Positions 28,241 to 63,014 are shown, numbered from the stretch's first letter. The stretch is 64,000 bases of DNA from Macrostomum lignano (GCA_002269645.1 NIVC01000133.1:51030-115029); one strand, 5' to 3'. Numbers and translations are program-made. Notes: generated by a model from the sequence alone, not told the origin.

Positions 28241-28719
28241 TCAGACGTTCGACTCCTCGATGTGGCCGATCGGCTCCTCTTGCAGGCGTCTCAGACTGTG
28301 CTGATAATGCAGCTGGTGGGGCTGCTGCTGCTGCTGCATGAACTGCTGGCGATGCTGCAGTTGCTGCTGCTGCTGGAACTGATACTGCAGCTGTAGCTGC
28401 TGTTGCTGCTGCTGCTGCTGCTGCTGCTGCTGAATCAGCTGCTGACGACCACCGTCTGGCACCAGCCGACCGAAAGCCTCGTGACCTCCTGGCATCGGCC
28501 CGGAAGTCAACTGCTCCGACGATGCTGGGACGCCGCCGCCGCCACTGCCGCTGGTGTTGTATGTTGCTGAAGTCGCCGACCCGACCGCCGACATTGCGAT
28601 GAGGCCGGCCGCGTGGTAGCAGGCGGCCAGCAGGAGGCCGCACACGCTGAGGCTGCACAGGGCGCGGGCGATGCTGCGCGCGTCGGTTAGGAGTTGCGCC
28701 AGAGCGTCGGACTGTGCGC
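28241..28719 (-). CDS. Large 5-TM membrane protein, last exon (TM5 + polyQ tail)
   Basis: Acceptor GATCAG, phase 1, in frame with ORF 28241-28645; ALCSLSVCGLLLAACYHAAGLIAMSAV; CAG-repeat polyQ; TGA. Confidence 0.82.
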
Positions 28720-28774
28720 CTGATCGACGTTTAGGAGAAATTCGGGATTTGTAATTGACCTAAAAGTATGGGTC

Positions 28775-29280
28775 CACGATCCCAAATCCCCACTCCCCCA
28801 TCCCAAATCCCCTTTCCCTGGTCCCAAATCCCCATTTCTGATCCCAAACCCCCACTCCCCAATTCAGAATCCCCATTCCCAATCCCAAACCCCCACACCC
28901 TAATTCTGAATCCCTCCCCAACTCCCCAATTCCAAATCTCCACTCCCCAATTCCAAATTCCTATTCCCCGATCCCAAATCCCCATTCTTCAATTAAAAAT
29001 CCCCATTACCCGATCCCGAATCCCTATTCCCCGATCCCAAATCCCCATTCCCCGATCCCGAATCCCCATTCCCCGATCCCAAATCCCCATTCCCCGATCC
29101 CAAATCCCCATTCCCCGATCCCAAATCCCCATTCACCGATCCCAAACCCCCACTCTCCAATTCCAAATCCTCATTCACCGATCCCAAAACCCCATTCTCC
29201 AATTCCAAATCCTCATTCACCGATCCCAAGCCCCCATTCTCCAATCCTAAATCCCCATTCCCCAATCCCAAATCCCCAAC
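28775..29280. repeat. 21-bp degenerate minisatellite (CCCCGATCCCAAATCCCCATT), intronic
   Basis: Direct. Confidence 0.9.
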
Positions 29281-29298
29281 CCTGAACTCGAGTCTCAC

Positions 29299-29461
29299 CT
29301 AGTCGCGCTAAGGACACATTGGCGCTGACTATTGGCAGAAAGTTGCACGTCTGATCGTCGAATATGACTGGCGAGACTTCGGTCCCGCCGAGGCTGCAGT
29401 ATTGCGGCTGCCGGTCAGACAGCTCGCATGCGTACCGCAGGTAGCTCTCTTTGAAATAGTT
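29299..29461 (-). CDS. Large 5-TM membrane protein, exon 10
   Basis: TTTGCAG acceptor / GTGAGA donor, phase 0/1; NYFKESYLRYACEL...CNFLPIVSANVSLARL. Confidence 0.82.
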
Positions 29462-29592
29462 CTGCAAATTCAGGTGTTTTCTTTTCTACAGACTGCGGAC
29501 TTTTCAAAAGAATGATAAAAATGAAAATGGATTCGAGCCCAGGACCTCTGCTACCTTTCGTCTGTCAGGAATTCTTCCGGCATGTCACTCAC

Positions 29593-30541
29593 CTGATCGT
29601 AATTGAACCTGCTGACCAGCTGCATCAGCCGGGCCACTTCAACGCGGGCCTCCAGCTTGAAGGCGCCGGCAAAGCCCGGCCCGTTCAGCAGCGTCGCTTG
29701 CGCCGAGGCCAGGCGTCCGGCCTGCTCGGCCAGTTCGGCCAGCAACGGTCGAGTTGGACGAGTTGCCGTCAAAAGCTGCCGCTGTTGCAGAGCCGACGAC
29801 GAGGTCAACTGAGCGGTTGAAAGCGCGCCAGTGGGCGTGGGCGGCGGCGCCGAGGAGGCGCTGAAGGCCAGGGCGGCCCGCTCGCAGACGGCAAGGACGA
29901 GGAGGAGGCAGAGTGCGGCGGTCAGGCCGCAGAGCAGCGCCAGGCAGTGGCCCGACTGCGAGCAGGCGACCCGGCGGGAGCAGCCGGAGGAGCCGTCCGA
30001 TGAAGTAGCCGACGCTGACGCGGACGCGGAGCCGGACTGGTCGAGCCGACGGCGCCGGTCTCCTGGCCGCTGCTGGAGCTGCTGCTGCTGCTGTTGGTCA
30101 AAGCGGCGACCTGGCGACTGCGGCTGGAGCGGGCGCAGGTCCGACTTGGCCGGGTCGTCGGCCGGTTGTCGGCCGCTGCACAGCCGCCTGACGGTGCGCA
30201 CGGTGTGGTAGAGGCGGTACAGCAGCACCAGCAGGTCCAGCAGCAGCAGGAACAGCCTCAGCTGCAGCAGGCTGAAGCCGACGCCGCCGCCGCCGCCGCT
30301 GCCACTGCCGCGCAGGAATCTGTCATCAACGCCTCCGGCATCTTCACCAGACCCGATGCTGCCGCTGCCAGCCTCGTTCCGGTAGGCGGAGTCGTCGTTA
30401 GAGCAGAAGTAGCGGTGCGAGTCTCCCACGGTGGCCGTGGACCCGGTGGAGGGCAGCTCTGGGGAGGCAGCAGCTGCGGCGGCGGCGGCGGCTGGCGGGT
30501 AAAACGCGGGATCGCTGAACTGCGGCAGCATCTGGCCGAAC
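29593..30541 (-). CDS. Large 5-TM membrane protein, exon 9 (TM3, TM4)
   Basis: TTTCACCAG acceptor, phase 2; GTGAGT donor, phase 0; hydrophobic LRLFLLLLDLLVLLY and CLALLCGLTAALCLLLVLAVC. Confidence 0.85.
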
Positions 30542-60192: not shown

Positions 60193-60749
60193 CAGACATG
60201 CAGGAAATAGCAGAACTTTGAATCACTCTCACAGCCATGCACTTTATTTCCTCAGTGGTTCGAGGCGAACTAAATACACAAAATCACTGATACGAGTTGG
60301 CTGTCAACAGCCAGCCACCGCCTGTCAATCACTATTGCTGTCACTTGACTATTAATAATAAACCACTGAATATTTTTAAAAATTTCAGTGCAGTTTGCAA
60401 TCGTACCCAACAAAAATTCCATCTTGTATCAGCCATGCAAATGTGAACTTTAGCAACCAAAATTTCTGCAAGTTTCTGCAAGTTTCAGTCGCAGAGAATT
60501 CCGTCAATTCTCTAGCAAAGCAAACTATTCGTGGATAATCCGGTTATGCAAGTGCGGCAGTGCACTTTTCGAATGTAGGCTTGAAGCTTAGAATTAGAAT
60601 TTTTTTATTAATAAATTATGCGAGTAAATCAGCTACTGTCGTCGCCAGGAAGTCTCTGAGTTTGGAGCTATTTGGAGCAGCAAATTTTGGTGGTGTATGT
60701 TGCTATGGTTAATCTCTAGATGTGAATAGATGGACGGCGATGCTCAGCA

Positions 60750-61417
60750 TTAGGGGCGCCACTTAAAGCATAAGGGGCGCCACTCTAAGTATCAGGGGCG
60801 CCACTTTCAGTATCAGGGGGCACTACTTTAAATATTAGAGGGGGTGCCACTTTAGGTATCAGGGGGCGCCATTTTAGGCATTAGGAGGCGCCACATTAAG
60901 TATCAGGGGGCGCCACTTTAGGTATCAAATGGCACCACTTTTAGTATCAGGGGAGCTACTTTAGGTATCAGGGGGCGCCATTTTAGGCATTAGGAGGCGC
61001 CACTTTAAGTATCAGGGGGGCGCCACTTTAGGTATCAAATGGCACCACTTTTAGTATCAGGGGCGCTACTTTAGGTATCAGGGGTTGCCATTTTAGGTAT
61101 CGGGGGTGCCATTTTAGGTATCAGGGGTTGCCATTTTAGGTATCAGGGGGTGCCATTTTAGGTATCAGGGGGCGCCATTTTAGGCATCAGGGAACGCCAT
61201 TTTAGGCATCAGGGGGCGCCATTTTAGGCATCAGGGGGCGCCATTTTAGGCATCAGGGGTCGCCATTTTAGGTATCAGGGGGCGCCATTTTAGGTATCAG
61301 GGGGCGCCATTTTAGGTATCAGGGGGTGCCATTTTAGGTATCAGGGGGTGCCATTTTAGGTATCAGGGGGCGCCATTTTAGGTATCAGGGGCGCCATTTT
61401 AGGTATCAGGGGGCGCC
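60750..61417. repeat. ~22-bp minisatellite (GGGGGCGCCATTTTAGGTATCA)
   Basis: Direct. Confidence 0.92.
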
Positions 61418-62017
61418 TAGCTGAGCTAAAAGTGCAGTACCGCAGACTTTAATATCGAACAGCGAAGAAATTTTAATCTCCCACACATGGGAGGTGACAG
61501 ACAGCAACTGAAACCATTATAAAATAGTGTGGTCTAAGCAACCACACCTAGCCACACTAAATCTGCCCCAAGCATAACAGCAGATGGCAGCCACACCCCA
61601 GATGCTCTTTAAGGATGGTCATGTCCGCCTACACACACAGAAACACACACAGGACTCACAAGCAGCAACAGCACTGAATGCTCAGCGCAGATCGATTGTG
61701 ATTGGGCCAAAGCTCAACCTCACCCACGACAGAAATCAATCTATCTTATAGAACAGGGCTGAAGGGGTGCAAATAAAGTGTGTTTGCTTGTTCACAGCAC
61801 ACTCTTTCACACCGCAGCTTTCAGGGAGAGGCTTTTGCTTGATTTGGCGGCCAGAGAGCAAGCCAGGATAGGGAACTTAAGAGGCTGGAAAGCCCGGAGT
61901 CAAGGCGAGTCTTACTGGCTCTCCGTGTGGCGAACTCTTTACTTTATGTTCCAACGTTGAATTCGACATAAAAACTACTATATTTATGTCGTACTTTAGT
62001 TCTGATTTTGAACTTGA

Positions 62018-62560
62018 TTGCCGTGATGATACTCACTGAGGTTGTCAACAGAACTATCATTTTGAATCATACTGGAGTGATGATACTCACTGAGGTTGTC
62101 AACAGAACTATCATTTTGAATCATACTGGAGTGATGATACTCACTGAGGCTGTCACCAGAACTATCATTTTGAATCATACTGGAGTGATGATACTCACTG
62201 AGGCTGTCACCAGAACTATCATTTTGAATCATACTGGAGTGATGATACTCACTGAGGCTGTCACCAGAACTATCATTTTGAATCATACTGGAGTGATGAT
62301 ACTCACTGAGGCTGTCACCAGAATCATCATTTTGAATCATACTGGAGTGATGATACTCACTGAGGCTGTCACCAGAACTATCATTTTGAATCATACTGGA
62401 GTGATGATACTCACTGAGGCTGTCACCAGAATCATCATTTTGAATCATACTGGAGTGATGATACTCACTGAGGCTGTCACCAGAACTATCATTTTGAATC
62501 ATACTGGAGTGATGATACTCACTGAAACTGTCACCAGAACTATCATTTTCTATCATACTG
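62018..62560. repeat. 54-bp minisatellite, ~10 copies
   Basis: Direct; gives an 18-aa periodic ORF. Confidence 0.95.
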
Positions 62561-62889
62561 AAAATGGTATCCTATCTCAGAATAGTTTGAGCCAAACATA
62601 GCCAAATGCCAATTTGCTCTCGGCGAAAACCTATTCAGGGGCTTCAAATTGCATCACAATAGCAAACGGTTCCAAAAATCGCCAGCACAAAAATTCTGGC
62701 CAACCGGAGCGCTGCTTGGCTAAAAAAATACCATTCAAGTTTGAAGAGCGAAAATCGGTTTTTTAGAGTGTTGGCACAAGAGGGGAGACGGGGGATCAGT
62801 TCTCCCTCGGATTTTCAGACAGGCAATTTGCTGCAGGCAACACACACGCCTGGCTCCGGCGCCACTCCAGCCTCCGCTGCAGCGCTCAC

Positions 62890-63014
62890 CCAGATGAAGC
62901 TCTTATCGACGCCGTTGCTAGCGATGCGCACTCGTCGCTGTCGCCTCGATCGCAGGCCATCCACCGGCTCGGCAAGGACACCGCGCGAGAGCTGCACCTT
63001 GATGCGCTGGGATT
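62890..63014 (-). CDS. Large 5-TM membrane protein, first exon seen in the window (gene continues beyond 64000)
   Basis: CCCGCAG acceptor (phase 1) / GTGAGC donor (phase 0); SQRIKVQLSRGVLAEPVDGLRSRRQRRVRIASNGVDKSFIW. Confidence 0.72.

Follow-up and report, generated by a model that had tools for sequence, protein, structure and literature searches.

Proteins with the class II membrane-fusion fold have been described from viruses and from cells. The viral representatives, such as hantavirus and nairovirus Gc and alphavirus E1, have a three-domain, beta-rich ectodomain in which an Ig-like domain III is followed by a stem and a transmembrane (TM) anchor of one or two helices, and they have a companion glycoprotein (Gn or E2). 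Among the cellular representatives, EFF-1 and AFF-1 occur in nematodes, EFF-1 being a single-pass type I protein of ~650 aa. HAP2/GCS1 is likewise single-pass, and archaeal Fsx1 has more than one C-terminal TM helix, three being predicted (PMC9259645). Here we describe a gene on the minus strand of a 64,000-nucleotide stretch of Macrostomum lignano DNA (GCA_002269645.1 NIVC01000133.1:51030-115029), this whole stretch being termed the window and positions being counted from its first letter. The part of the gene inside the window occupies positions 28241-63014 and, in a refined model, consists of 13 exons totaling 4490 nt and encoding 1495 aa. Its product is predicted to carry an ectodomain of class II fold ahead of five TM helices, and we propose, with a probability of roughly 0.55, that the gene encodes an architectural variant of the class II fusogen superfamily whose protein is, or is descended from, a cell-cell fusogen.

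An earlier note on this DNA, made from the sequence alone, had described the N-terminal part of the protein as receptor- or adhesion-like. An AlphaFold2 model was generated for the ectodomain of the orthologue from Tubulanus (Nemertea), using an alignment that included the M. lignano sequences, and had a predicted local distance difference test score (pLDDT) of 84.1 and a predicted TM-score (pTM) of 0.73. All of the 24 matches obtained with this model in a Foldseek search of the PDB at an E value of ≤1e-3 were class II fusion proteins (E 4e-11 to 1.8e-6), with probabilities of ~1 and ~580 aligned columns, and the next match had an E value of 2e-3. The proteins matched were hantavirus Gc, the Gc of Crimean-Congo haemorrhagic fever virus (a nairovirus), alphavirus E1, Caenorhabditis elegans EFF-1 and HAP2. 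Nearly all of the named matches among the top 42 in BFVD, a database of predicted viral structures, were glycoproteins of bunyavirus, alphavirus, nido-like or flavi-like type. Within the model, a C-terminal beta-sandwich at residues ~522-608 is followed by a stem (pLDDT < 50) and then by TM1, and this sandwich separately matched domain III of dengue E (4x42; probability 0.99, TMt 0.54). In the window, exon G1 and the 5′ portion of exon H, together with TM1, supply the counterpart of domain III, stem and anchor. These results indicated that the ectodomain, a beta- and disulfide-rich unit of ~560 aa, is predicted to have the three-domain class II (or "fusexin") fold with an Ig-like domain III and a short stem, and hence that it is not the generic receptor- or adhesion-like segment originally suggested.

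Relatives of the protein were identified by a HMMER search of 1.8 billion representative proteins with the spliced model as query, which yielded 59 matches. One of these, P0003 (A0A1I8J937), is an M. lignano protein of 1195 aa with 97% identity to the gene model; further relatives had identities of 30-44%, one pair of them being confirmed as M. lignano. Full-length relatives of 1300-1900 aa were present in Tubulanus, Owenia (Annelida), several molluscs, trematodes and Nematostella (Cnidaria, P0044). Each of these proteins has five TM helices, and the ectodomain and the five-TM part occur together in one protein. A single gene had been proposed in the earlier note, and the union of its first seven with its last four exons is upheld by the full-length relatives, in which, across four other phyla, the two halves are joined in a single polypeptide. 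Upstream of the region visible in the window, the full-length relatives have two hydrophobic segments at the N terminus, an EGF repeat of the calcium-binding type and a Cys-rich repeat of TNFR type. Pfam scans were performed on the window exons (E ≤ 1) and on 41 family members (E ≤ 5), and beyond the EGF and TNFR repeats upstream in relatives no family was detected in the window exons or the full-length relatives. Searches of PDB sequences with phmmer and with profiles returned nothing relevant, so that the earlier statement that no family could be assigned holds at the sequence level. Every named match outside M. lignano is labeled "uncharacterized" or "hypothetical," and a literature search on HAP2 and fusexins in flatworms, on spiralians and on multi-pass forms, with partial journal coverage, found no description of this family. 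On the sequence evidence, therefore, the protein is a member of an uncharacterised animal family with representatives in Cnidaria, Platyhelminthes, Nemertea, Annelida and Mollusca.

The gene model was derived from stop-to-stop frames, splice sites and a scan of the introns for in-phase, codon-biased AG..GT segments. The 11 exons of the earlier note were reproduced exactly (minus strand, GT-AG bounded, phase consistent, 4310 nt, 1435 aa and no internal stop), the chain being completed by use of an alternative donor at 55559 and by a 105-nt Cys-rich cassette; two small exons, C2 and G1, had been missed. The exons are listed below in the order of transcription, with the GC content of third codon positions (GC3) where noted and, as profile match, the E value from the profile search described after the list. 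The 11-exon chain consists of all entries other than C2 and G1.

63014-62890, minus strand: exon A, first exon visible in the window; acceptor cag/AAT, donor TGG/gtgagc, GC3 0.78; product ...RSRRQRRVRIASNGVDKSFIW, the start of the class II-like ectodomain.
55782-55559, minus strand: exon B, 224 nt; donor 55559 gives ...HAKYCR/QPIPDHY.
53135-52952, minus strand: exon C; canonical splice sites, GC3 0.89, profile match E 1.9e-9.
51861-51799, minus strand: exon C2, 63 nt, NYEFIRFSEFGEYNPYRVGSE; flatworm-specific insert found by the intron scan.
51370-51178, minus strand: exon D; splice sites, GC3 0.75, profile match E 6.5e-8.
49365-49261, minus strand: exon D2, 105 nt; Cys-rich block CC...C.....C.......C......CA.G, profile match E 2.3e-5.
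47093-46745, minus strand: exon E; GC3 0.87, profile match E 7.2e-18.
46036-45756, minus strand: exon F; family-invariant PF..S..W.....C (invariant columns F, W and C), profile match E 2.3e-9.
38908-38792, minus strand: exon G1, 117 nt, EGQSLLRHYF...LWTINIT; start of the membrane-proximal Ig-like domain III.
32314-31057, minus strand: exon H, 1258 nt; rest of domain III, low-complexity stem, TM1, basic loop, TM2 and outer helical loop 1; profile match E 5.4e-24.
30541-29593, minus strand: exon I; end of loop 1, TM3, basic disordered cytosolic loop, TM4 and first half of outer loop 2.
29461-29299, minus strand: exon J; Cys-containing tip of outer loop 2, junctions confirmed by P0001.
28719-28241, minus strand: exon K; return helix, TM5, cytosolic tail with polyglutamine (polyQ) and C-terminus, stop codon at 28241-28243.

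Codon periodicity was strong in every exon, with GC3 values of 0.70-0.89 against 0.34-0.57 at second positions, and the flanks were lower in GC. A profile built from non-Macrostomum relatives alone was searched against all 2570 six-frame open reading frame (ORF) pieces of the window. At E < 0.01 this profile matched six minus-strand exons, which were colinear and had E values of 2e-5 to 5e-24; above this threshold, the exon starting at 55782 was matched in register (E 0.06), and the only other matches, both weak, were to TM3 (E 0.38) and to one plus-strand segment (E 0.49). The NG..(K/Q)(S/Q)F(I/V/T)W motif of exon A and the exon B sequence that follows it are kept in the close relatives P0011 and P0012. 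Exon B has three candidate donors in phase; 55559 was chosen because with it the family-wide YCRxPxPxYY motif is regained and the score against the non-Macrostomum profile is 14 bits higher than with the other two. Removal of exon D2, which corresponds to the Cys-rich block reported in the earlier note, cost 58 bits. Exon C2 is present in P0003 and has a counterpart, NTLYTKYSRLGNYNPYSVSD, in P0012; against the profile it scored −6.5 bits, with no counterpart in other phyla. Exon G1 (acceptor cag/AG, donor ACAG/gtgagc) is also in P0003 and added 27 bits, and its direct splicing to exon H generates the conserved W.I.I.G...P.Y motif at the junction. Exon H and the other 3′ exons are 99% identical to P0001 and P0002, two UniRef fragments from M. 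lignano, which also confirm the H/I junction (VLWKR/FGQM) and the I/J and J/K junctions. Relatives conserve the C...C...C.F(L/M)P pattern of exon J. As implied in the earlier note, the gene is incomplete on its 5′ side: exon A begins at an acceptor and the relatives have ~250-500 more N-terminal residues, and hence the 5′ end lies beyond 64000.

The ranking of hantavirus and other bunyavirus Gc proteins as the best structural matches raised the question of an endogenous viral element, that is, a captured bunyavirus-like or retroelement envelope glycoprotein, and endogenous viruses of invertebrates are known to include class II envelope genes (PMC9094657). The viral proteins have the lowest Foldseek E values (4e-11 to 1e-7) and share with the M. 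lignano protein the predicted three-domain, beta-rich fold over ~580 aligned positions and the order of Ig-like domain III, stem and TM anchor. There is, however, no detectable sequence similarity, and the M. lignano protein comes from a spliced cellular gene conserved across animal phyla, has five TM helices with two large helical loops and, in relatives, upstream EGF and TNFR repeats, and belongs to a family for which no companion glycoprotein was recognised. The many introns (at least 13 spliced exons), the host-like codon bias and the conservation of one EGF-TNFR-ectodomain-5TM architecture from Cnidaria to Spiralia make a recent viral capture unlikely. Furthermore, no viral or retroelement Pfam match was found in the ORFs scanned, the only mobile element remnant being an intronic one of THAP/P-element type. 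The probability of a viral element is thus considered very slight; an ancient capture before the cnidarian-bilaterian split may have occurred but would concern the origin of the gene and not its present nature.

A second explanation is that the gene is a true but highly divergent spiralian orthologue of HAP2/GCS1, the sperm fusogen, with extra C-terminal TM helices. The UniRef name of the near-identical M. lignano protein A0A1I8J937 is "Hapless 2," and HAP2 (6dbs, E 7e-8), itself a class II-fold protein of eukaryotic cells, was among the significant Foldseek matches. HAP2 is reported to have been lost from most bilaterian lineages (PMC2766252) and no paper reporting HAP2 in flatworms was found, so that a gamete-fusogen role has no known holder there. 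Against orthology, the HAP2-GCS1 Pfam domain (PF10699) was absent from the window exons, from P0003 and from all 41 of the members scanned, including that of Nematostella (E ≤ 5), and the family profiles matched no solved HAP2 sequence (E ≤ 10). In addition, HAP2 has a single TM helix (PMC9259645) against the five found here, and viral Gc, E1 and EFF-1 all ranked above HAP2 in the Foldseek search. A canonical HAP2 has been reported from Nematostella (PMC2766252), which also has the family member P0044; HAP2 and this family therefore probably coexist in that species, which suggests two separate genes and lineages. Orthology to HAP2 was consequently judged to be rather unlikely.

The other cellular fusexins are also distinct from this family. 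EFF-1 and AFF-1 are animal proteins with the class II fold, and EFF-1 was matched by the model (4oje and 4ojc; E 2e-9 to 4e-8), but no sequence match or Pfam EFF-AFF match was obtained in the window exons or the 41 members, and the nematode proteins are single-pass, in contrast to the multi-pass form described here, with a taxonomic range that does not overlap that of this family. Fsx1 resembles the M. lignano protein in the number of C-terminal TM helices exceeding one but is from another domain of life, lacks large extracellular helical loops between its TM helices and was not among the significant Foldseek matches.

Five hydrophobic helices following a large ectodomain had been recognised in the earlier note, and all five were located by hydropathy in exons H, I and K, as follows.

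31848-31919, minus strand: TM1.
31653-31739, minus strand: TM2.
31059-31652, minus strand: outer loop 1, the portion in exon H.
30208-30276, minus strand: TM3.
29884-29946, minus strand: TM4.
28583-28663, minus strand: TM5.

The loops after TM1 and TM3 are basic, with K+R to D+E counts of 9/1 and 15/7, respectively, while TM2 and TM4 are each followed by a long loop, of 287 and 170 aa, respectively, with the sequons NRT and NVS, all in agreement with the earlier description. One sequon in loop 1 falls in a conserved FN.S motif, and TM3 has a conserved Asp followed by an Arg across phyla. The predicted topology, with the N terminus outside and the C terminus inside, fits the positive-inside rule and the conserved sequons of the long loops. 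The evidence hence supports one multi-exon gene whose product is a membrane protein with heavy glycosylation, a large ectodomain and five TM helices, although "pentaspan," the term used previously, describes only the C-terminal module because full-length relatives carry two more hydrophobic segments, together with the EGF and TNFR repeats, upstream.

Two further motifs reported in the earlier note are present but are not conserved. The furin-type RQRR forms part of RSRRQRR (62932-62952), located ~20 residues ahead of the start of the conserved class II-like domain at the boundary with the upstream EGF/TNFR module, and is not kept in P0011, P0012 or other phyla; the polyQ tract of the tail (28319-28447) likewise is not conserved in relatives. 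The C terminus is E-E-S-N-V (28244-28258), with ESQV in the nemertean and ETKV in the annelid and two further relatives, and thus the flatworm, nemertean and annelid proteins end in an S/T-x-V pattern resembling a class I PDZ ligand. The molluscan proteins instead have a conserved SCESGVY(V/L)GE(T/N)D near the C terminus.

An AlphaFold2 model of the pentaspan module had a pLDDT of 73 and contained helices of 69, 50 and 76 residues with pLDDT values of >90, so that these 50- to 76-residue helices of the two outer loops probably form a long helical stalk. A prominin- or tweety-like protein organising membranes, with the large N terminus as an accessory adhesion or receptor module, would have the same layout: five TM helices, N terminus outside and C terminus inside, and two large glycosylated extracellular loops of long helices after TM2 and TM4 (predicted in the present case; the comparison draws in part on PMC11405016). 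The N terminus of those proteins is short, however, whereas the M. lignano ectodomain comprises at least 670 aa and is predicted to have a specific fusogen fold. Neither Prominin (PF05478) nor Tweety (PF04906) was matched in the Pfam scans of the 41 members or the window exons, the family profile matched neither among PDB sequences and the 58 solved structures in the PDB that Foldseek matched to the pentaspan model included no TTYH or prominin entry. None of these matches was significant (best E 0.72), a null result that is no strong negative, as Foldseek is weak on long helical bundles. The likeness to prominin pointed out in the earlier note is thus topological only, and membership of the prominin or tweety type was deemed quite improbable.

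A fusogen of this architecture could operate as follows. Contact with the opposing membrane, or with a partner, would be made through domain II. The protein would then oligomerise, and domain III would fold back with the stem against the core, drawing the TM1 anchor toward the target membrane, a step modelled on EFF-1, HAP2 and the class II proteins of viruses. The stalk of helices from the two outer loops, lying in cis beside the stem, could restrain or position the fusogen in the manner of a built-in companion protein, and the PDZ-type tail could localise or anchor the protein. The fusing cells would possibly be gametes or those of syncytial tissues such as flatworm epithelia.

Several points weigh against this proposal. 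The fusogen role is inferred from a predicted fold, and the fold was called from Foldseek matches rather than from strand-by-strand topology or placement of a fusion loop in the model. The protein modelled was the nemertean orthologue, which is ~23% identical to the M. lignano protein. The Foldseek TM-scores were low (0.13-0.20), due to differences in domain orientation (hinge angles) between multi-domain proteins, and the family profiles matched no class II protein among PDB sequences (E ≤ 10), the likeness being at the level of fold only. The "Hapless 2" label is a weak hint because other UniRef names in the M. lignano proteome are unsupported. Finally, there is no precedent among fusogens for an anchor of five TM helices with large loops in cis, and this arrangement might point to an exapted role other than fusion.

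This last point leads to the main functional alternative, in which the protein is derived from a fusogen but does not fuse membranes and serves as a cell-surface adhesion, recognition or signalling receptor on a class II scaffold. EGF and TNFR-type repeats are typical of receptors, a PDZ-ligand-like tail would suit such a role, fusogens do not typically have so large a multi-pass anchor and the several divergent relatives (30-44% identity, with one pair in M. lignano) suggest diversification. To our knowledge, however, all class II-fold proteins characterised so far are membrane fusogens, and the parts required for fold-back (domain III, stem and adjacent TM helix) are conserved in this family. 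A non-fusing receptor was, therefore, considered improbable, and a protein that is, or derives from, a cell-cell fusogen is preferred. A more far-reaching version, which we regard as possible but put forward tentatively, is that the family represents a fourth eukaryotic fusexin branch: an ancestral metazoan cell-cell fusogen that persists in Cnidaria and Spiralia, has disappeared or can no longer be recognised in other lineages, is fused to its own regulatory and anchoring pentaspan stalk and serves in gamete fusion, syncytium formation or both in animals that have no known fusogen.

We know of no protein established as merging sperm and egg membranes in most bilaterians, or of fusogens established as building the syncytia of flatworms, including the tegument of parasitic species. 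The M. lignano family provides a concrete and testable candidate fusogen for Spiralia and Cnidaria. It would also widen the range of class II architectures to include a multi-pass anchor with large cis loops and upstream EGF and TNFR repeats, which bears on the debate over a host or viral origin of class II fusogens. Should the protein no longer fuse membranes, it would still offer the first clear example of the class II fold having been exapted.

Some features of the database entries for M. lignano differ from the present model. P0003 contains three extra exons (36137-36052, ~35470-35360 and 33785-33602) that are phase neutral as a set. Other phyla lack them, their inclusion reduces the profile score by 17 bits and disrupts the W.I.I.G junction, and the one at ~35470-35360 begins inside a 16-bp minisatellite. 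On these grounds the three exons were rejected as probable annotation artefacts, alternative splicing being the other option. In exon I, P0002 splices out 30109-30345 (TM3) and P0001 splices out 29956-30429 (TM3 and the cytosolic loop), both as in-frame GT..AG segments on the minus strand. These introns were rejected as probable prediction errors because TM3, which they would delete, is conserved across phyla; a TM3-less isoform, if real, would invert the downstream topology. A candidate cassette exon at 44335-44273 had no homology support. The UniRef names of the fragments P0001, P0002, P0004 and P0061 are "Peptidase_M3 domain-containing," "ABC transporter domain-containing" and "RING-type domain-containing." The "Peptidase_M3" name of P0001 and P0002 was rejected, as the Pfam scan found no M3 domain, and the families listed for the 41 scanned members, P0004 and P0061 among them, included no ABC-transporter or RING family.

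The region is repeat rich and eukaryotic in character. Downstream of the gene, positions 1-28000 of the window contain GC-rich ORFs and proline-rich or other repeat arrays (e.g., 4789-5555, 8775-9298, 22025-22921 and 24401-24955) together with nonrepetitive ORFs at 10495-10956 (minus), 12011-12451 (minus), 13203-14263 (plus) and 14744-15349 (minus); no Pfam match was obtained for these ORFs and arrays. The intron between exons F and G1 harbors a remnant of a THAP9/P-element-type DNA transposon with broken frames (42320-43610, minus strand), in which a THAP match at 43341-43610 (E 8e-4, under the Pfam cutoff) and matches to the P-element transposase helix-turn-helix and, weakly, to an RNase H-like domain at 42320-42904 were detected. 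The introns are also packed with minisatellites having periods of 7-58 bp and up to 88 copies, at the following positions.

28773-29278: minisatellite.
35439-35904: minisatellite.
40430-40898: minisatellite.
45040-45688: minisatellite.
49448-51108: minisatellite.
51987-52686: minisatellite.
55836-56358: minisatellite.
57066-59132: minisatellite.
62023-62560: minisatellite.
63412-64000: minisatellite.

These arrays yield long spurious ORFs on both strands (e.g., one of 246 aa at 52248-52988), which could mislead ORF-based or ab initio gene calling.

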